64,000 bases of DNA, from sequence record MK250021.1; one strand, written 5' to 3'. Below are positions 12,765 through 56,064 of this stretch, piece after piece. Both the position numbers and the translations under genes were made by a program. The stretch's first letter is position 1. Each line of letters opens with the position of its first letter. Below the pieces are notes generated by a model. It had not been told where the DNA came from. It saw nothing but the letters and a program-made list of their open reading frames with translations, and searched no databases.

Positions 12765-13140
12765 NNNNNNNNNNNNNNNNNNNNNNNNNNNNNNNNNNNN
12801 NNNNNNNNNNNNNNNNNNNNNNNNNNNNNNNNNNNNNNNNNNNNNNNNNNNNNNNNNNNNNNNNNNNNNNNNNNNNNNNNNNNNNNNNNNNNNNNNNNNN
12901 NNNNNNNNNNNNNNNNNNNNNNNNNNNNNNNNNNNNNNNNNNNNNNNNNNNNNNNNNNNNNNNNNNNNNNNNNNNNNNNNNNNNNNNNNNNNNNNNNNNN
13001 NNNNNNNNNNNNNNNNNNNNNNNNNNNNNNNNNNNNNNNNNNNNNNNNNNNNNNNNNNNNNNNNNNNNNNNNNNNNNNNNNNNNNNNNNNNNNNNNNNNN
13101 NNNNNNNNNNNNNNNNNNNNNNNNNNNNNNNNNNNNNNNN
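12765..13140. other. Scaffold gap (376 N)
   Basis: Run of N. Confidence 1.
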
Positions 13141-31013: not shown

Positions 31014-32384
31014 GGTACAGAGGATGTTTCTATTGTTGAGATTTCTGATGGTATGATTGAGGTTCTTGCATCTGATGGTGATGTGTTCCTTGGCGGTCAG
31101 AATTATGATAATGCCATTGTTCAGTGGCTTATCGATGAGTTTAAGAAAGATACAGGTATTGATTTGAGTAAGGATAAGATGGCATATGCACGTCTTGTAG
31201 AGGCAGCAGAGAAAGCAAAGTGTGAGTTGTCAACTACTACTCAGACAGAGATTAACCTTCCTTATATTACTGTATCTGATGGTGTTCCTCAGATGTTGAT
31301 TAAGACTCTTAATCGCGCTACATTTGAGAGACTTACAGAAGATCTTACAAATAAGGTTGTAGAGATTGCACATCGTGCTGTAGAGAAGGCAGGTATTACA
31401 GAGGATCAGATTAGTGAGATTCTTCTTGTTGGCGGCTCTTCACGTATTCCTTCAGTTCAGGATGCATTGGAGAAGTCATTTAACAAACCTTTGAATAAGA
31501 CCTGTAATTTTGATGAGGCTGTTGCACTTGGTGCTGCTATTCAGGCAAATACACTTGCAGGTAATGCAACAGAGGATTCAGTACTTCTTTTGGATGTTAC
31601 ACCAATTTCACTTGGTATTGAGGTAAATGGTTGTGAGATGGCTAAGTTGATTGAAGCTAATACAACTATTCCTACACGTAAGTCACAGACATTTACAACT
31701 GCAGTAGATAATCAACCAGCTGTAACTATTAAGGTACTTCAGGGTGAACGTCCAATGTCCGCTGATAATAAGGTAATTGGTACATTTAATTTGGAGGGTA
31801 TTGCACCAGCTCCTAAGGGTGTTCCTCAGATTGAAGTAACATTTGATATTAATGCGGATGGTATTCTTGAAGTAACTGCAAAGGATAAGGGTACAAATAA
31901 GGAACAGAAGGTAACAATTCAGTCTCCTAACGCACTTTCTGATGAAGAGATTGCACGTATTAAGGCAGATGCTGAGAAGTTTGCAGAAGCAGATAAGAAG
32001 AAGAAAGAGGAAGTTGATAAGTTGAATACTGCAGAACAATATGCAACACAGGTTCAGAAGTATATTGATGATGAGAAAACAGGTGCATCTGTTCCATCTG
32101 ATAAGAAAGAAACATTGAAGACAAAGATTACTGCAGTTCTTGATGCAGTTTCTAAGAAGGATGTATCAGCAGCAGAGACTGCACGTGCAGATCTTGAAAC
32201 TGTATTTAAACCTATTGTTGAGGAAATGTATAAGAATGCAGGTGGTGCAACAGCAGGTCAACCTCAGAATGAATCACAGGGAAATCCATTTGCTAATGCA
32301 GGATTTGGTGATGCAAATGCTTCAACTTCTGATACTAAGGCAGATGATGACGTTCAAGAGGCAGATTTTGAGGAAGTAAAGTAA
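31014..32384 (+). CDS. dnaK: DnaK exon 2 (spliced product 654 aa)
   Basis: GTEDVS, LGGQNYD, LLVGGSSRIP, LLLDVTPISLG, GVPQIEVTFDI. Confidence 0.95.
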   Translation, partial: GTEDVSIVEISDGMIEVLASDGDVFLGGQNYDNAIVQWLIDEFKKDTGIDLSKDKMAYARLVEAAEKAKCELSTTTQTEINLPYITVSDGVPQMLIKTLNRATFERLTEDLTNKVVEIAHRAVEKAGITEDQISEILLVGGSSRIPSVQDALEKSFNKPLNKTCNFDEAVALGAAIQANTLAGNATEDSVLLLDVTPISLGIEVNGCEMAKLIEANTTIPTRKSQTFTTAVDNQPAVTIKVLQGERPMSADNKVIGTFNLEGIAPAPKGVPQIEVTFDINADGILEVTAKDKGTNKEQKVTIQSPNALSDEEIARIKADAEKFAEADKKKKEEVDKLNTAEQYATQVQKYIDDEKTGASVPSDKKETLKTKITAVLDAVSKKDVSAAETARADLETVFKPIVEEMYKNAGGATAGQPQNESQGNPFANAGFGDANASTSDTKADDDVQEADFEEVK

Positions 32385-32568
32385 TAAAAATATAAGGTCT
32401 TGAAATATAGACCTTATTCTAAATAAGTTATATATATTATAACAATATACAATTTAGAAATAATGAAAACTATTAAAGGTGAGTAAAAGTATGTAAAGAA
32501 GGGACGTTATCATGAGAATTGTATAACGTCCCTTTTTATGTTTAAACATTAATTTATTTGATTTAAAT

Positions 32569-33657
32569 ATGACAAAAGACTTGTATGATATATTAGGTAT
32601 TGAGAAAGGTTGTAATGATCAGAAAAAGATTAAAACTGCATTTAGACAACTTTCTAAGAAATACCATCCAGATATGCAGAGAGGAAAATCAGATGCAGAG
32701 GTAAAGGAAGCTGAGGAAAAGTTTAAGGATGTTAACCATGCATATGAAGTTTTGAGTGATCCTCAAAAGAAAGAGAATTATGATAATTTTGGTGATGAAA
32801 ATGGAAGACCAAATCCATTTGGTGGTTCCGGTGGTTTTAATCCATTTGGTGGTGATTTTGATCCATTTGGAGGATTTAATCCATTTGGAGGATTTGGTGG
32901 AAGTTCACGTCAGAAGAAAAATCAGGTTCAACCAGGTAGGGATATTCAGATGAAGATTCCTGTATCTATTGAAGATATATTTAAGGGAGTTAAGAAGAGT
33001 GTTAAATTTAAGAGAAACGTAAGGTGTTCTGTATGTCATGGTGCAGGTGGAACTGGTCAGAAGACATGTCCAAAGTGTCATGGAACTGGTAGAATTATTC
33101 ATCAGCAGCAATTTGCAATGGGGTCATTCTCTATTCATGAAGAAGTTTGTCCATTGTGTCATGGAACTGGTTTTTATGTAGAGAACAAATGTGATAAGTG
33201 TGGTGGTTCTGGATTTGATAAGAAAGAAGTAAAACTTGATATTGAATTACCATCTGGAGTACAGAATGGAGAATATCGTGTATATAGTGGTGAAGGATCC
33301 GAATCAAAGAATATTTCAGGACCTAATGGTAATTTTATCGCTATTGCAGATTATACGTTTGATACAGATAGGTATCAGGTTGATGGGTTGAATGTAGTTG
33401 AACATATTCATGTCCCTTATTATAAATTGTTGCTTGGCTGTTCATATACTCTTAATATTCCTTCTGGTGTAAGTAAGGTTGTTAAGTTGAAGAGTTGTAT
33501 TAAGGAAGGAACAATTATGAGATTAACCGGCGAAGGACTTAAGAGGTCTGATGGCCAAAAGGGTGATTACTTCATTTGTGTTCATTATCAATTTCCAGAA
33601 GACCTTAGTGCGAATGATAGAGCATTGCTTGAAGTTATAGAGAAAAACAATAAATAA
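32569..33657 (+). CDS. dnaJ: DnaJ
   Basis: J domain with HPD, G/F region, four CxxCxGxG repeats. Confidence 0.95.
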   Translation: MTKDLYDILGIEKGCNDQKKIKTAFRQLSKKYHPDMQRGKSDAEVKEAEEKFKDVNHAYEVLSDPQKKENYDNFGDENGRPNPFGGSGGFNPFGGDFDPFGGFNPFGGFGGSSRQKKNQVQPGRDIQMKIPVSIEDIFKGVKKSVKFKRNVRCSVCHGAGGTGQKTCPKCHGTGRIIHQQQFAMGSFSIHEEVCPLCHGTGFYVENKCDKCGGSGFDKKEVKLDIELPSGVQNGEYRVYSGEGSESKNISGPNGNFIAIADYTFDTDRYQVDGLNVVEHIHVPYYKLLLGCSYTLNIPSGVSKVVKLKSCIKEGTIMRLTGEGLKRSDGQKGDYFICVHYQFPEDLSANDRALLEVIEKNNK

Positions 33658-42761: not shown

Positions 42762-43523
42762 ATGTCTAAAGATGATTTAGTAAATATACAAGAACAACCA
42801 GGAATTTATATGATTTAGAATGATATAAATAAAAAATGTTATATAGGCTAGAGTATAAATTTACATACAAGATTGTTACATCATATAAATAATTCTATAA
42901 ATAATCGTTATAATGCACCAATATATAGAGCATTTAAAAAATATGGTATAGAAAATTTTTCTGTATATATTTTAAAAAAATTTGATAATCCTATAACTAC
43001 ATATATTAAAGAATAGTTAGATATTTATGAGAAGAAATATATTAATGAATATAATAGTTATGGAAGCACGGGATATAATCAAACAAAAGGTGGTGATGGA
43101 GGTATAGATGGATATAAATTTACTAAAGAACAAAAATTAACAATTTCTAAAAATTCGTATAAAATATAGAATGATGGTAGAAATACAATATATTGTTATG
43201 ATATAAAAAATAATAAATTTATTGAATCAACATCATTATAGGAATTAAAACGATAGTTAAATGTTAATTTTAGAACAGGATGTATTAGAAATTTATTAAT
43301 ATATAATCAATATATTTTATCACGTTCAAAAGATGATTTATTATAGAAAATTAATAAGTATAATAATAAATTATAGGAGTATAATACAAATGGTTGTAGT
43401 AAATTAACTCATGAAATGAAAGATGATATAATTAATAATATATCAGAAAAAGAATTTCTTAGTAAATATAATGTATGTAAATCTACATATTATCATTATA
43501 AAGAAAAATTAAATATATCTTAA
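42762..43523 (+). CDS. GIY-YIG homing endonuclease, 253 aa; code 15
   Basis: PGIYMIQN..KCYIGQS..R, KYGIENF, EKKYI, GYNQTKGG; about 8 TAG; absent from track. Confidence 0.9.
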
Positions 43524-43546
43524 TTGCGTGTATTAAGATATAGTAT

Positions 43547-43618
43547 TGGGGATTAGTATAGTGGTCAGTACAGAGGTCTCTAAAACCTTTAGGCCGAGTT
43601 CGAGTCTCGGATCCCCAA
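43547..43618 (+). tRNA. Amber suppressor tRNA (anticodon CTA), Gln-type
   Basis: TGGGGAT/ATCCCCA acceptor, loop ctCTAaa (43580-82), T arm ccgag-ttcgagt-ctcgg. Confidence 0.95.
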
Positions 43619-43660
43619 CAATTAAATGACATAAGTAATATTTTAAAGATTTGATGAATT

Positions 43661-50186: not shown

Positions 50187-50789
50187 ATGAAAGAAAACGA
50201 ATTTATTGATGAAGTCGACGAGACAGAAGTAAATCCAGATATTGAAAATAATAACACAGAAGATACAAGTTCAGATATTAATGAAGATGATATTGTTACA
50301 GATGAAGATGATAATGAGTATGTAACAAAAGAATATGCTGATAATCTTATTAATGAACTTAATAAAGCAAAGCAAGAAGCAAAATCATGGAAAGACCGTT
50401 ATACATATCTTTATTCTGATTGGGATACATATAAGCGTAGAGTATTAAGAGAAAAAGATAATATTTCTAAATATGGAAGTGAGAAAGTGATTAAGGATAT
50501 TCTTCCTATTATTGATGATTTTGATAGAGCATTTATGCATATGTCTGATGAGCAGAAGGAAGGAATTTCTATTATTTACAAGAATTTTATTTCTGTATTG
50601 GAGAATCATGATGTTACTATCATTCCTGCAAATCATGGTGATGATTTTAATGATAATCTTCATGAAGCTGTTTCAGTTGTACCTTCAATGGATGATAGTG
50701 AGAAAGGTAAGATTGCTGATTGTATCACAAAGGGATATATGTTGCATGATAAAGTTATTAGATATGCAAAGGTAATTGTATTCAATTAA
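50187..50789 (+). CDS. grpE: GrpE nucleotide exchange factor
   Basis: DWDTYKRR, LPIIDDFDRA, FNDNLHEAV, KGYMLHDKVIRYAKV. Confidence 0.92.
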   Translation: MKENEFIDEVDETEVNPDIENNNTEDTSSDINEDDIVTDEDDNEYVTKEYADNLINELNKAKQEAKSWKDRYTYLYSDWDTYKRRVLREKDNISKYGSEKVIKDILPIIDDFDRAFMHMSDEQKEGISIIYKNFISVLENHDVTIIPANHGDDFNDNLHEAVSVVPSMDDSEKGKIADCITKGYMLHDKVIRYAKVIVFN

Positions 50790-51033
50790 TATATCTAATA
50801 TCATCGTCATCATATAATTGTTTAAGCATATCATCAATATTCAATTTTTGAAATTGTTTCTACTATATACTCATATCAAAATTAAATCTATTTTCTGATT
50901 TATTATATTTTGCAATAGTTTTATCAAAATCAAATTGATTATCAGTATCAAATATAGAACGGAGTGTATAGTTTTTACCATTATGACGTAATGTTTTTAC
51001 AAATTCTCTATTAGTTGGATATTTTCTATTCAT
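50782..51033 (-). CDS. Small hypothetical protein, 83 aa; code 15
   Basis: MNRKYPTNREF... with TAG TAG, ends TGA; TAAATA upstream. Confidence 0.5.
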
Positions 51034-51138
51034 CTTTAAATATATACATTAATTATAATTTATTTATTCAGAATTATTAATGAATATTAAATATAGAAAA
51101 TAACTAAGTAAATATTTTTATATTTAGAAAATATGTTG

Positions 51139-51146
51139 TATCTTTG
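51139..51146 (+). promoter_or_regulatory. Bacteroidota sigmaA -7 element
   Basis: TATCTTTG before 51171. Confidence 0.7.
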
Positions 51147-51170
51147 CAGTGTTAATAATTATTAAAGAAT

Positions 51171-51701
51171 ATGAATACAAATGAAGCAAAAGTAATCAAC
51201 TGGTTTGATATTAAGGACGATGTAAAAGTCATTAATGAGAATACTAAACATAAAAATAATGTTGAGAATAAAGTAAAACATAATCATGCAAATAATATTA
51301 ATATATTTGATGGGTCTATTCAAGTAAATCATGCTATTTGCAAAAAAACTACTGCAAAGATTATTGAGTCATTTGAAAGTGTACTTGTACATAATGTAGC
51401 TGATAAAGTAAAGTATCATTGTGATGGTGGCATCTTTAATGGTAAGACAGTTTGTATTAAATGTCGTGCTAATGCATATAATACAGGTGGAAACTTTACA
51501 TTCACAGAAGATGATTTAACAGCGGATATGATTGCTGTTTATTACTATGATGAGAATAGTAATCTTGGACATTGGTTTATTTGTGATAGAAATCGTTTGA
51601 GCAAGAATAAGATGAAACAATCACAAAATATTTATATTGTTCATCAAGATTATATTAAGAAACATGCATGGTGTGAATATACGGTAACGTTTAATAAATA
51701 A
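51171..51701 (+). CDS. Hypothetical protein
   Basis: Track ORF. Confidence 0.8.
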   Translation: MNTNEAKVINWFDIKDDVKVINENTKHKNNVENKVKHNHANNINIFDGSIQVNHAICKKTTAKIIESFESVLVHNVADKVKYHCDGGIFNGKTVCIKCRANAYNTGGNFTFTEDDLTADMIAVYYYDENSNLGHWFICDRNRLSKNKMKQSQNIYIVHQDYIKKHAWCEYTVTFNK

Positions 51702-51802
51702 TTTTTAATTTTTTGAGAAAAAAGTTTGTAAAATTATAGACTTTTGAAAAAAATTTAGATATATATTATATAGAATAAATTAAAATAATAAATAAGATAA
51801 TT

Positions 51803-51931
51803 ATGAAAACTTTAAATATGACATATTGTATACATCCAGTTTGTGGTATGGTTCACATGTTCCCATGTGGAGGTGGTCGACCTATGTCTTTACTTGAGGA
51901 TTTAAAGTTTTCTTGTATGTTGCAATCATAA
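51803..51931 (+). CDS. Putative leader peptide, 42 aa
   Basis: MKTLNMTYCIHPVCGMVHMFPCGGGRPMSLLEDLKFSCMLQS just before a terminator. Confidence 0.5.
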   Translation: MKTLNMTYCIHPVCGMVHMFPCGGGRPMSLLEDLKFSCMLQS

Positions 51932-51960
51932 CCGGTTAACTCAACATATATACAATTTTT

Positions 51961-52010
51961 AAACCTCAAGTAGAAAATAGCAGAAAATCTACTTGAGGTT
52001 TTATTTTTTA
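51961..52010 (+). terminator. Terminator/attenuator hairpin ahead of tRNA cluster
   Basis: 14-bp aaacctcaagtaga/tctacttgaggttt plus T tract. Confidence 0.8.
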
Positions 52011-52014
52011 ATAT

Positions 52015-52087
52015 GGTCCGTCTGGTGTAATTGGTAACATGACAGATTGTGGTTCTGTTGTTCAGGGTTCGAGCCCCTAACGTGACC
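52015..52087 (+). tRNA. tRNA-His(GTG), irregular acceptor stem
   Basis: acaga-ttGTGgt-tctgt; G-1:C73. Confidence 0.8.
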
Positions 52088-52106
52088 CAAAATATTATTA
52101 ATATTT

Positions 52107-52183
52107 AGCGTAGTGGCCCAGTTGGTCTAAGGCACCTGTTTTGGGAACAGGTTAGATCGCACGTTCGAATCGTGTCTACGCTA
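52107..52183 (+). tRNA. tRNA-Pro(TGG)
   Basis: agcgtag/ctacgct; cctgt-ttTGGga-acagg. Confidence 0.92.
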
Positions 52184-52297
52184 CAGAATAGAGTTCTTAT
52201 GTTATCCTTACATAACTAAAAGAACTAAAACTTAAGATGGTAAGGCATCTATATAATGGAAGTTCACGCCCAAGGGAAGATTTATAAGTTATAATTT

Positions 52298-52372
52298 ACT
52301 CTGTTAACTCAATTGGATTAGAGTATTTCGCTACGAACGAAAAGGTTGTGAGTTCGATTCTTACACAGAGTA
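52298..52372 (+). tRNA. tRNA-Arg(ACG)
   Basis: actctgt/acagagt; tttcg-ctACGaa-cgaaa. Confidence 0.92.
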
Positions 52373-52381
52373 CAAGTAAAT

Positions 52382-52454
52382 ATCTCTATAGCTCAAAAGA
52401 ATAGAGCAGTTCTCTCCTAAAGAACAGATAACAGTTTGATTCTGTTTGGAGATA
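52382..52454 (+). tRNA. tRNA-Arg(CCT)
   Basis: atctcta/tggagat; gttct-ctCCTaa-agaac; T loop TTTGATT. Confidence 0.85.
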
Positions 52455-52541
52455 CAAACAAAATTAACATTATTAATATAGACTTTTATCTATTAATTGA
52501 ATATATTATAATGTAATTTGAATTTTAAATACTATTAAAAT

Positions 52542-52950
52542 GTAGGGGAGTAGAGTTCCCATCATTTAAAGAGTTTCGAGAAGAAGGTATTGTATGTAAA
52601 AGCATTAAGTTTCGTTTAGCTGACGAAATGTGACCACGCGGTGATGGTATTCATGTACATAGGTCCATCCGTATAACTTCAGGGAATCGTAAGCATTAAT
52701 CTTGGCGAGTACAGTTTTTAGTCTGAAATGACGAATTTTCCTACTGGTTGCTCAATATGATATTAAGAGTCGGAGATAATTATTTGTAAGTTCCACAATT
52801 ACGAGAGGAAAATGGAATTAAGTTGAAGGAATAACGTGATTATTCTTGGTGTGATTAGGAGAACGAAAATAACCAGTATGTATGGTGTACGTGTGCATAC
52901 AGAAACAAAGCAAATAATAGCCCTTAGAGAATTTGCCGAGTAAAGGACAT
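52542..52950 (+). ncRNA. Unidentified structured non-coding region
   Basis: GC-richer, several hairpins, closing stem 52542-49/52737-44. Confidence 0.45.
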
Positions 52951-52971
52951 TAATAGTATTTTTATTTATTT

Positions 52972-53049
52972 GCAGTATTGGTGTAGCTGGAGGCGCATTC
53001 CTGACTTCCACTCAGGCGGCTTGCGCGAGTTCGATTCTCGCATACTGCT
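52972..53049 (+). tRNA. tRNA-Gly(TCC)
   Basis: gcagtat/atactgc; cctga-ctTCCac-tcagg; U73. Confidence 0.92.
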
Positions 53050-53123
53050 CATAATAAGGTAGAGTATCAATGAATGATAGAGAATAAGTTCCTGTCTGAG
53101 ATCAACCTATCTGTAGTATTTAG

Positions 53124-53149
53124 ATAATTTTATGTATACATAAAATTAT
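53124..53149. repeat. Perfect 26-bp palindrome
   Basis: ataattttatgta|tacataaaattat. Confidence 0.9.
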
Positions 53150-53258
53150 AACGAAGTTTATATTACCTGTAGTCGTAATATTCAAATCGTTCGTTGACAT
53201 AGTTATTCCGTGATGTAGTAGAGAGTTATAATCAGCATATAACAGACGGAATATTTTT

Positions 53259-53331
53259 GCGGAAGTATATCAATGGTTAGATAGATACGTTGCCAACGTA
53301 TAGGTTGTGAGTTCGAGTCTCATTTTCCGCT
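53259..53331 (+). tRNA. tRNA-Gly(GCC)
   Basis: gcggaag/tttccgc; atacg-ttGCCaa-cgtat; U73. Confidence 0.92.
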
Positions 53332-53474
53332 CTATAAACGTTTCGAGGTTTTAAAGTTGAATGTACCACCTTGCGCTTGTGTTACTATTCACCTTTGAGT
53401 AATAGTAAAAAACTTATGGTATCAAGGATGTTTTCTACGTTGTTACATCCATTTTTTTGAATATGATAGAATAT

Positions 53475-53621
53475 GAGAGTCAATACAGCAAATTAAATTG
53501 ATAGATAATGTTTGAAGATTATACACAAAAAGACTCTTGAATCAAATTATAATGGGAGGCAATACAGCAAATTTTGTATTAAGGATTATTTTGCTAAAAT
53601 AATATTCTATACGCCTCCTGA
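53475..53621 (+). repeat. Two tandem structured AATACAGCAAATT elements
   Basis: 13-nt identical core, different but self-complementary closing stems, each followed by TGA. Confidence 0.75.
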
Positions 53622-53626
53622 TACTT

Positions 53627-53710
53627 GACGAGTTGCTGAGAATTGGTTAATCGCACGATCTGCAAAATCGTTGGTCATATGACATGTCGGTTCGAGTCCG
53701 ACACTCGTCT
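53627..53710 (+). tRNA. tRNA-Cys(GCA) with long variable arm
   Basis: gacgagt/actcgtc; acgat-ctGCAaa-atcgt; 14-nt variable region; U73. Confidence 0.88.
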
Positions 53711-53743
53711 CTTTAGATTAATATTTTAAAATACTATTATAAG

Positions 53744-54004
53744 ATGAAGAAATTATTTTCTTTTATATTTTGTACAATAATGATTACATCATTATTTGGA
53801 TGTGCAACAAAACAAGATACAATTAGTTACCTTGATAATTATGTACATAAAAATATTTCTGAAAATTGTATAAACATTTTCAGTAATCAAAGATATAATG
53901 AATATATTGATACTGTTACTAATATTAAATATTATGTTTATATAGATTATAATAGTAACATCAATATAATAGATAAAAGATTTCCGAGGTATACAGCTCG
54001 TTAA
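53744..54004 (+). CDS. Small putative lipoprotein
   Basis: MKKLFSFIF...LFGC lipobox-like. Confidence 0.65.
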   Translation: MKKLFSFIFCTIMITSLFGCATKQDTISYLDNYVHKNISENCINIFSNQRYNEYIDTVTNIKYYVYIDYNSNINIIDKRFPRYTAR

Positions 54005-54302
54005 AAGAGGTTGACTTGTATATTCTACATTACCTACTGTATAACAATATATGAGTGTACATGTGAAAAGATACACCATGTTCTATTAATATAAAAATGT
54101 ACATATATAGGGTAACAATTATATTAATATCAGATGCATGACATATATGAATATAATAACGAATTCGTGAAATGACTATTGTTTTTAGTTGCTTGGAAAC
54201 GGCGAACTTAGTTTTATCAATAGAGGAAGTATAATATTAAAACAGTTAAATGTAAATCTTTCTGAGACAATGGGGACAACTTGTAGTAAGAGAGTATTTT
54301 TA

Positions 54303-54417
54303 GCTAGTATAGTTTAGTGGCAAAACACCCAAATCCCAGGGATAAGAGATGGTTTGAGTTGTAGTGTACAATACAATATACAGAAGATTTTAGTGAGTTC
54401 GATTCTCACTGCTAGCT
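54303..54417 (+). ncRNA. tRNA-like RNA with expanded anticodon/variable region
   Basis: Acceptor gctagta/tgctagc, D arm and T arm intact; ~65 nt between D and T arms. Confidence 0.7.
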
Positions 54418-54423
54418 CAATAT

Positions 54424-54551
54424 GAAGTGCGTAGTTTAAATGGTAAAACATCCTTTGAGTAGGACTCTGACGAGAGATAGATAACAATGCTAGACTCTAT
54501 TTAATTCCATTGTTTTATTAATGAGTATAGGTTCGAATCCTATGGTACTTC
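54424..54551 (+). ncRNA. tRNA-like RNA with multi-stem insert replacing anticodon arm
   Basis: gaagtgc/gtacttc, D arm and T arm atagg-ttcgaat-cctat intact; ~76-nt insert. Confidence 0.7.
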
Positions 54552-54841
54552 CAAATTTATATAGATAAAAAGATTCTGGTGATTAGATAAAACATTATAA
54601 GAAAAGAGAAAAAACTTAGGTAACTGCAGATAACTAAGGGTCGTAAGAGTATATGAAGAAAGATGAACTATGGATACCTCCTTATAATGCGTTTTATCAA
54701 TAATTAAAGTAGTCTATAATATAAGTTCATTAACGTTATAGAAAAAACGAATATTGATAAGTCTACTATGCAGATGGGGCATTGAGAATGCCGTATAGTT
54801 CTAAAGCATCGTAAAACAGTTTATTTATATATTTTTAATAT

Positions 54842-54916
54842 GGCTAGATAGCTCAGTTCGGTTAGAGCGCGTGATTCATATCCACGAGGTCGTGTGTTCG
54901 ATCCACACTCTTGCTA
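54842..54916 (+). tRNA. tRNA-Met or Ile2 (CAT)
   Basis: ggctaga/tcttgct; loop ttCATat; T arm gtgtg-ttcgatc-cacac. Confidence 0.85.
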
Positions 54917-54995
54917 CAGTGTTTTTAGTTGTTTATTAATGATTTGAGATATATCAATTTTTGGTATATCTCTTTTTTATTTAGAAAATAATTTG

Positions 54996-55003
54996 TATCT
55001 TTG
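54996..55003 (+). promoter_or_regulatory. Bacteroidota sigmaA -7 element
   Basis: TATCTTTG before 55030. Confidence 0.7.
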
Positions 55004-55029
55004 TATTATTAATTTAAATTTAATAGATT

Positions 55030-55521
55030 ATGAAGAAATATAAAGTATATCAACTTCGTCGAGAAAATGAAGTTATTATCGATGATAATGAAATATATGA
55101 TGCAAGAATGAAAGTTATTGCAGAGTATGAAATTAAATCAGATAGAATTGATTTTGATATTATTTCAGAAGATATATGGCATTTATGTAATGTTCATTGT
55201 TGGGATAGATCATGGCATGCAGGTGAAGGTGTTCAGAAAGATGATATTATATTAACTCCTACATCTGACTTTGATGGTTTCTGTAATAGTGATATTGTCG
55301 TAGAAACCGAAGATGGACTTTATCTTGCAGAATCATTTGGATTTATGAAAGTAAATTCGTTAGAAGATGCATCATATAGAATCATTGCGAGATTTCCGTT
55401 TATTTCGTGGGATAATATGAGAAATAAGAATGAATATGATAAAGATAAACTATCTGAAGTAAAACGTAAGATTGATTATGAGAATAAATTGATGTTAGAA
55501 GAATATAAAAATAAAAAATAA
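55030..55521 (+). CDS. Hypothetical protein
   Basis: Track ORF. Confidence 0.8.
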   Translation: MKKYKVYQLRRENEVIIDDNEIYDARMKVIAEYEIKSDRIDFDIISEDIWHLCNVHCWDRSWHAGEGVQKDDIILTPTSDFDGFCNSDIVVETEDGLYLAESFGFMKVNSLEDASYRIIARFPFISWDNMRNKNEYDKDKLSEVKRKIDYENKLMLEEYKNKK

Positions 55522-55571
55522 TTTTTTGGAATAATTTCTCCTAAATATTTTTTTATTTAAAAAAGAACATG

Positions 55572-55579
55572 TATCTTTG
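55572..55579 (+). promoter_or_regulatory. Bacteroidota sigmaA -7 element
   Basis: TATCTTTG before 55627. Confidence 0.7.
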
Positions 55580-55626
55580 TATTGTAAATAATAAACATAT
55601 AATAAACAATTAAAAATATAAAAATT

Positions 55627-56064
55627 ATGGCAACAGTTAAGATTTCTCCAGCACAGGTTTTTCCAGTAGCAAACAAGATTCGTGCAGCAAAGCACATCTC
55701 AATGAAGGAAGCATACGCAGAAGCAAAGGCACAGCTTATTGCTGAAGCAGAGAATGCAGTTAAGACAGCAGAGACTGTAGTTGAAGTACCTACTAATGTT
55801 GTAGAGATTCCTGTAAATATGGAGTTGCATGCACAGCTTGTAGAGAAGATGCAGAATGCAAATGTAAAGTTCGTATTCTTGAACAATAAGGGTAAGAAGA
55901 TTATCACTACTGGTACTTTGAATATGTCAAAGGTTCCTACAAACCGTAAGGTACAGGGACGTAAGGAAGCAAAAGATGAGAACACACAGGTATTCTATGA
56001 TGTTCGTCATGGTGTATATCGTTCATACCAGAAGGATAAGTTGGTAGAGATTATCTCTAAGTAA
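55627..56064 (+). CDS. DUF2693-like SH3-barrel protein
   Basis: VKFVF..KGK...TGTL...VFYDVRHGVYRSY. Confidence 0.65.
   Translation: MATVKISPAQVFPVANKIRAAKHISMKEAYAEAKAQLIAEAENAVKTAETVVEVPTNVVEIPVNMELHAQLVEKMQNANVKFVFLNNKGKKIITTGTLNMSKVPTNRKVQGRKEAKDENTQVFYDVRHGVYRSYQKDKLVEIISK

Follow-up and report, generated by a model that had tools for sequence, protein, structure and literature searches.

Attenuator-like leaders at the heads of the two large tRNA gene clusters of Lak megaphages

Organization of the locus

The stretch of DNA analyzed here (the window, 64,000 nucleotides of record MK250021.1) corresponds to a Lak-B2-type megaphage of gut Prevotella and presents a G+C content of 25.6%. Sequence comparison revealed that bases 51100-52500 were 100% identical to Prevotella phages Lak-B2 and Lak-B4, 99% identical to the other Lak-B genomes, and about 81% identical to Lak-A1, A2 and C1, none of these records being annotated. 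A run of 376 N is found at 12765-13140. On the + strand, a cluster of tRNA genes (52015-54917) encodes tRNA-His, Pro, Arg(ACG), Arg(CCT), Gly(TCC), Gly(GCC), Cys, two intron-bearing tRNA-like genes, and Met, and is closed by a hairpin and T-tract at 54946-54982. The two tRNA-like genes (54303-54417 and 54425-54551) carry 40-55-nt inserts in the anticodon arm, were scored by Rfam at 37.5 and 30 bits, and were missed by ARAGORN; their amino acid identity could not be read from the sequence, and therefore the tRNA set given for this cluster is incomplete. The tRNA-Cys(GCA) gene (53627-53711) is unusually long, with 85 nt, and its best Rfam match was the tRNA-Sec model, below the gathering score of that model (38.3 against 47 bits). 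An 86-codon ORF with a lipoprotein-like signal (Cys at residue 20) and only faint family matches lies inside the cluster (53744-54004), between tRNA-Cys and the intron-bearing tRNA-like genes.

The region preceding tRNA-His, also on the + strand, starts with a conserved promoter-like block (51709-51770) with a 28-nt core at 51738-51765, whose promoter function is inferred. The attempt to assign this block by eye to the Bacteroidota (–33/–7) or the σ70 (–35/–10) spacing favored neither, and a generic promoter scan did not single it out. The block is followed by an A/U-rich and indel-prone 5′ untranslated stretch (51771-51802) and by an ATG-initiated ORF of 42 codons (51803-51931) ending in TAA, with 4 Cys, the motif HMFPCGGGRP, and a core (H11-R26) rich in His, Pro, Cys, Gly, Met and Arg codons. 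A central hairpin of 8 bp with a TTCC loop, which could be a pause hairpin, lies inside the ORF (51852-51871), and another hairpin (51914-51950) carries the stop codon in its loop. Downstream, a putative intrinsic terminator is formed by a 14-bp stem (51961-51974 / 51988-52001; 13-nt loop, –18 kcal/mol) and a T-tract running to 52009, 5 nt before tRNA-His (52015). The ORF, the terminator and the first tRNA lie within 215 nt, and there is no room for a promoter between the T-tract and tRNA-His, so that the tRNAs must be made by read-through. After the TAA of the leader, the frame stays open through the 5′ arm of the terminator up to a TAG at 51971-51973 (window 51929-51973; sequence L015 1557-1629). 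Since Lak phages carry a tRNA with a TTA anticodon, which reads TAA, as well as the TAG suppressor, stop codon read-through would drive ribosomes into the terminator, a feature that the second leader described below does not share. The TAG-suppressor tRNA itself (43547-43619, anticodon CTA) is preceded by a 35-codon ORF (43416-43546) whose stop codon lies in a 10-bp hairpin devoid of a T-tract, with neither promoter block nor terminator at that site.

Pairing between the leader ORF and the terminator

An initial sequence-only reading had claimed that the 42-codon ORF preceded a 14-bp terminator and that bases 51891-51903 could pair instead with the terminator 5′ arm (51961-72) by 9 perfect bp plus 3. 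The observation was confirmed, all of these features being found where they had been placed. Bases 51891-51899 are an exact copy of the 3′ arm of the terminator and pair with 51964-51972 (9 bp); after a 1-nt bulge, the pairing continues through 51901-51907 with 51957-51963, and therefore the helix (51890-51907 with 51957-51973) reaches 16-18 bp and is longer than that reading had stated. The duplex energy was –16.8 kcal/mol, against –7.4 ± 1.8 kcal/mol in 2000 dinucleotide shuffles of the leader, of which only 1 was as good (fraction 0.0005).

The other terminators of this phage were used as natural controls. A total of 17 strong hairpin and T-tract elements was found in the window, 11 of which started 34-92 nt after the stop of a same-strand ORF of at least 70 codons and none of which lay inside one, indicating that this phage uses intrinsic terminators and that the leader hairpin is of the same form. 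Considering these elements and those from three other stretches of the Lak-B7 genome, 21 of 22 ordinary terminators, including the one closing the tRNA cluster (z +0.7), had no complement to their 5′ arm in the preceding 170 nt (z between –0.7 and +1.3), whereas the terminator of the leader presented a z of –4.4. The single exception (z –4.4) lies at 32465-32540, between a dnaK-like ORF (31053-32384) and a dnaJ-like ORF (32569-33657), where a 7-codon mini-ORF (32465-32488), which begins with the same nine bases as the tRNA leader (ATGAAAACT), sits just before a strong terminator (T-tract at 32533), and it may be another attenuator, in front of dnaJ.

A second leader built to the same plan

The genome of Lak-B7 (550,702 bp) presented 34 tRNA matches, nearly all of them in two clusters, at 125.3-134.2 kb and at 422.5-425.4 kb, the latter being the cluster of the window. 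The 28-nt core of the promoter-like block occurred exactly twice in this genome with up to 3 mismatches allowed, once at the head of each cluster, and its 25-nt form occurred exactly twice in each of three other complete Lak genomes (Lak-A1, Lak-C1 and a 553-kb IMG/VR genome), always at the head of a tRNA cluster. The block is near-identical between the two heads. At the other head (positions 2506-2790 of L013, the stretch carrying the other cluster), the block is followed by an A-rich spacer, an ATG at about the same distance, a 37-codon ORF (2568-2681) that is unrelated in sequence, a different hairpin and T-tract (2728-2777) and, 14 nt later, tRNA-Trp, the first of about 20 tRNAs (Trp, Ile, Asn and others). 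The similarity in spacing is only approximate, since the distance from block to ATG varies by indels, and in some variants (metagenome contigs L023 and L032) an A/T-rich insertion of roughly 230 nt, which looks like a small mobile insert, separates the block from the leader at both the His-type and the Trp-type head.

In this second leader, the last third of the ORF (2648-2666) pairs with the 5′ half of its own terminator (2730-2747) by 17 bp at –18.8 kcal/mol, which was matched by 0 of 2000 shuffles, with a z of –3.8 to –4.3 against the natural controls. Neither cluster has a strong terminator inside it and each ends with an ordinary one (about 11959 in L013), and therefore each cluster looks like one operon. 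Two unrelated sequences built to the same plan, behind the same otherwise unique block, constitute the strongest argument that the plan is functional. An ordinary 5′ leader with a leaky terminator or a structural hairpin, which would only damp read-through from upstream genes or stabilize or process the tRNA precursor as an RNase P/E substrate, with an alternative pairing that merely helps folding, is an unlikely alternative. It agrees with the need to make the tRNAs through this hairpin in any case, and no experiment shows regulation; however, it does not explain why only the two tRNA-head terminators, out of 24 tested, have a strong upstream complement placed inside an ORF.

Predicted folding and ribosome position

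In silico folding revealed a four-segment arrangement. In the full-length minimum-energy fold of the leader of the window, the terminator forms and segment 1 (51806-51816, codons 2-5) pairs by 11 bp with 51901-51911, an anti-antiterminator that the sequence-only reading had missed and that completes the classical design. Segment 2 (51889-51911, codons 30-37) can pair either with segment 1 or with segment 3 (51957-51974, the 5′ arm of the terminator plus flank), and segment 3 pairs either with segment 2 or with segment 4 (51988-52009, the 3′ arm, 51988-52001, and the T-tract). Without the 3′ arm, the minimum-energy fold presents the antiterminator, which encloses the hairpin carrying the stop codon. 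Folding of the growing transcript gave 1:2 first, then 2:3 once segment 3 was out, and then 3:4 (–57.2 kcal/mol as the unconstrained optimum; –55.7 with 1:2 also enforced), whereas the antiterminator state was at –52.7 kcal/mol. Similarly, in the second leader, region 2 paired first with 2576-2596, then with 2730-2747, and then the terminator formed (–47.6 against –41.3 kcal/mol). The final states are thus only 4.5 and 6.3 kcal/mol apart, a fine balance that a passive leaky terminator leaves unexplained, although at equilibrium the terminator state always wins in free RNA.

The position of a stalled ribosome was modeled by removing everything up to 12 nt past the first base of the A-site codon and computing pair probabilities. 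With no ribosome, the terminator probability in the leader of the window was 0.999; with the A site at codons 6-26, the antiterminator probability was 0.26-0.93, highest at codons 17-23 and dipping to 0.18 at codon 24; and from codon 27 on, where segment 2 is covered, the terminator probability was 1.0. The permissive stretch contains both His, two of three Pro, three of four Cys, all four Gly and the Arg codon, and therefore the earlier claim that stalling near the Cys, Gly, Arg, Pro and His codons would leave the antiterminator free holds, except for Pro27 and beyond. In the second leader the effect was weaker, with antiterminator probabilities of 0.08-0.37 at codons 7-12 and 0.15-0.36 at codons 18-22, which include the single Trp codon. 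These are equilibrium numbers, and in the cell the order of synthesis would favor 2:3.

Conservation of the leaders

A total of 23 distinct His-type and 8 Trp-type DNA variants was collected from Lak phages; searches of viral contigs for more distant relatives with degenerate back-translated patterns returned only the same Lak contigs or chance hits (contigs L038-40). The layout was conserved in all 23 distinct Lak variants, and the pairing partner was the same in every variant of both leaders, but in the A/C clades the bulge of the antiterminator shifts and its energy drops to –12.4 kcal/mol. Comparison of the window with the A clade and the two most distant variants gave a DNA identity of 93-95% for the leader ORF, 83-93% for the spacer to the terminator, 76-93% for the terminator including its variable loop, 82-96% for tRNA-His, 47-66% for the 5′ UTR (but 100% in the B-like variant L042), and 78-81% for the upstream 176-codon gene. 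The conservation of the whole 129-nt ORF region is also not explained by a passive leader.

Loops and the 5′ UTR vary while the stems do not; for example, all 9 stem pairs of the hairpin at 51914-51950 are invariant in the 23 variants. The only stem changes preserve pairing as G.U, two of them in the terminator of contig L041, one in helix 1:2 of variants L049/L050 (C-G to U.G in segment 1), and a further one in the inner stem of the second terminator in variant L027. Such changes are tolerated only in RNA of this strand and point to it, but there is no two-sided compensation, and covariation, which had been proposed beforehand as a check, neither supported nor refuted the structures. In contrast, tRNA-Trp (L013 2791-2882, 92 nt) and its relatives show a clean compensatory change (G-C to A-T) in the anticodon stem between Lak clades, so that the divergence is enough to show covariation where changes are tolerated.

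Coding potential and composition of the leader ORFs

ATG-ORFs of these lengths arose in 3% (42 codons) and 1.5% (37 codons) of shuffles of the two leaders, a joint chance of about 4e-4. The frame remained open in all 23 His-type and 8 Trp-type variants, one of which (L041 1501-1629, the same contig with the two G.U-preserving changes in the terminator) has TAG at codon 8 and is open only under the Lak code (TAG=Gln). The only length changes in the ORF were in-frame 9- and 18-nt tandem duplications, with one or two extra copies of the unit ATGGTTCAC (L047-L050, equivalent to window 51848-51856), which add Met-Val-His repeats; as duplications of a 9-nt unit, they would be in-frame regardless of coding. 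Indels are common just outside the ORF. On the other hand, substitutions showed no coding signature, with nonsynonymous to synonymous alleles of 24:8 and 12:4 spread evenly over codon positions, which indicates that the amino acid sequence as such is not protected. This is expected of the functionless peptide of an attenuator, but equally fits an untranslated RNA.

These substitutions, together with the absence of any PHROG or NCBIfam match and of homologues other than Lak leaders, argue against functional micro-proteins, for example a metal-binding peptide, that merely sit in front of the tRNA clusters, each with its own terminator. Although the ORFs are conserved, were called as genes in many assemblies, and one of them is rich in Cys, His and Met, which are typical metal ligands, the residues Cys9, Cys14 and Cys33 vary, the two unrelated peptides occupy the same slot, and no room for a tRNA promoter remains after the terminator, so that this possibility is considered very unlikely.

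Excluding the start codon, 19 (B clade) to 21 (A clade) of 41 residues of the His-type peptide (46-51%) are His, Pro, Gly, Cys, Met or Arg, exactly the amino acids of the identified tRNAs in its cluster, against a background of 16.8% in 31 long ORFs of the window (binomial P 1e-5 to 4e-7), and only 2 of 6316 proteome windows of 41 residues reached 21. The other leader presented 1 of 36 His/Pro/Gly/Cys residues, and its cluster has no His, Pro, Gly or Cys tRNA (Fisher P 0.0004). A passive leaky terminator does not explain this match in composition either. However, this test was post hoc, the G+C-rich Gly, Pro and Arg codons lie in and beside the central hairpin, so that part of the composition could be a by-product of RNA structure, and the make-up of the second leader was not distinguishable from the proteome average. 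Moreover, individual putative sensor codons are lost in some variants (Arg26 to Gln in 4, Pro21 to Gln or Ser, and Cys14 to Tyr).

Ribosome-coupled attenuation as the favored interpretation

The element is almost certainly, judging from sequence, a functional and conserved two-state leader gating both Lak tRNA operons. Ribosome-coupled transcription attenuation that senses the supply of the charged tRNAs of the cluster is the explanation that accounts for the most features, namely the ORFs, their position over segments 1 and 2, the permissive codons and the composition, with a probability of about 0.5. In this view, each cluster would be one operon running from a cluster-specific promoter block, through a leader, to a tail terminator. 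A ribosome translating the leader without delay would run over segment 2 to the stop codon, keeping 2:3 from forming, so that 3:4 would form and transcription would stop. Conversely, a ribosome held up in the middle of the ORF (codons about 6-26 in the leader of the window) would cover or separate segment 1 and leave segment 2 free, 2:3 would form as soon as segment 3 is made, and RNA polymerase would continue into the tRNA genes. Since the middle of the ORF of the window is packed with codons read by the tRNAs of the same cluster, the circuit would be a negative feedback, in which too little of these charged tRNAs gives more cluster transcription and enough gives termination. This view supposes that transcription and translation are coupled in Prevotella, whichever RNA polymerase reads the promoter, and a sensor for 6 to 15 amino acids at once would be unlike the classical one-amino-acid leaders.

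What the analysis demonstrates is the sequence layout, its conservation, its duplication in the second cluster, and the predicted energetics, whereas the transcription start, translation of the ORFs, termination at the hairpins, ribosome stalling, the dependence of read-through on translation and charged-tRNA supply, and the physiological signal are inferred for this uncultured phage. In fact, a search of sequencing runs found no RNA dataset containing the locus, one wastewater run presenting 5% of the query words and the remainder being unclassified contigs. The interpretation offered by the sequence-only reading, that the phage senses tRNA depletion or cleavage and induces its own tRNAs, was thus partly supported: the mutually exclusive layout is real and statistically unusual, the cluster does supply the His, Pro, Arg, Gly and Cys tRNAs it had listed, and the match between peptide and tRNAs is significant, but the sensing itself remains inference.

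A conditional terminator that does not use translation is the main alternative, although an unlikely one. In this case, the same two-state RNA would be switched by a phage or host antitermination protein, an RNA (for example a tRNA), or polymerase speed, timing or tuning the expression of both tRNA operons, which also share the promoter block, and the ORFs would be tolerated rather than read. The two-state RNA, its conservation and its duplication are what the data actually show, no coding signature is seen, and the invariant 19-nt loop and spacer (51923-51960), with a 10-nt palindrome, are more conserved than attenuation requires and could be a binding site. Against it, two unrelated leaders both carry an ATG-ORF of 37-42 codons that spans segments 1 and 2 and is kept open in every variant, the composition of the peptide of the window matches its cluster, and no Rfam family, including T-box, matched at E ≤ 1.

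It is possible, at slightly less than even odds, that Lak megaphages regulate their own tRNA supply by leader-peptide attenuation, each tRNA operon being preceded by a test mRNA whose codons sample the tRNAs that the operon encodes. The phage would then transcribe a cluster only while those charged tRNAs are limiting, for example early in infection of a host with a different codon usage, or when host tRNAs are depleted or cleaved. This would be the first attenuator known to control tRNA genes, the first multi-amino-acid one, and the first in a phage of Bacteroidota. Why phages carry tRNAs, and how they deploy them, is an open question, for which the usual candidates are codon-usage compensation, replacement of degraded host tRNAs, and escape from anticodon nucleases. 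A built-in sensor coupling tRNA-gene transcription to the decoding speed of matching codons would show that tRNA supply is actively kept in balance during infection, would extend leader-peptide attenuation to a new class of regulated genes and to a new host phylum, and would give a simple, portable part (promoter block, leader, terminator) reporting the availability of defined charged tRNAs. In addition, the present analysis defines the predicted transcription units of the two Lak tRNA clusters, which had not been annotated.

Comparison with known systems

Large phage-encoded tRNA sets arranged in clusters are found in T4, T5 and huge phages, and the Lak tRNAs, their introns and the TAG recoding were described in two papers (PMC6784885 and PMC8346664), which never mention a promoter, terminator, attenuation or leader. 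Full-text searches found no description of attenuation in front of tRNA genes in phages or bacteria, and E. coli pheV, where a leader was looked for, has only a plain promoter. T-box riboswitches also provide a terminator/antiterminator switch that responds to tRNA status upstream of translation-related genes; however, they bind uncharged tRNA directly, need no ORF, have specifier-loop and T-box motifs, and are found mainly in Firmicutes, whereas here an ORF is conserved and a covariance-model search of 50500-56000 against Rfam at E ≤ 1 returned only tRNA-clan matches.

Leader-peptide control is documented for amino acid operons and for some aminoacyl-tRNA synthetase genes. Among the latter are pheST/pheM of E. 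coli. Another case is the His-leader of hisS/hisZ in bacilli (PMC2965389). In these synthetase systems a component of the translation apparatus is controlled by how fast ribosomes read cognate codons, giving feedback on the charged-tRNA pool, but those leaders control the charging enzyme for one amino acid, whereas here the tRNA genes themselves, for many amino acids, would be controlled. The trp, his, leu, thr, pheA and ilv leaders of Proteobacteria share with the Lak leaders a short ORF, enriched in codons tied to the regulated product (an enrichment that in Lak was observed in the His-type leader but was not distinguishable from background in the second one), four segments with mutually exclusive 1:2, 2:3 and 3:4 pairings (predicted in Lak), an intrinsic terminator (also predicted in Lak) just before the first regulated gene, and a segment 2 overlapping the end of the ORF. 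They differ in that no sequence similarity to the Trp, His, Leu or Thr leader families of Rfam was found, the genes regulated in Lak would be tRNAs and not enzymes, the element is in a phage of a Bacteroidota host, the leader has 37-42 codons with many different putative sensor amino acids rather than a run of one, and the two Lak leaders share a dedicated promoter-like block.
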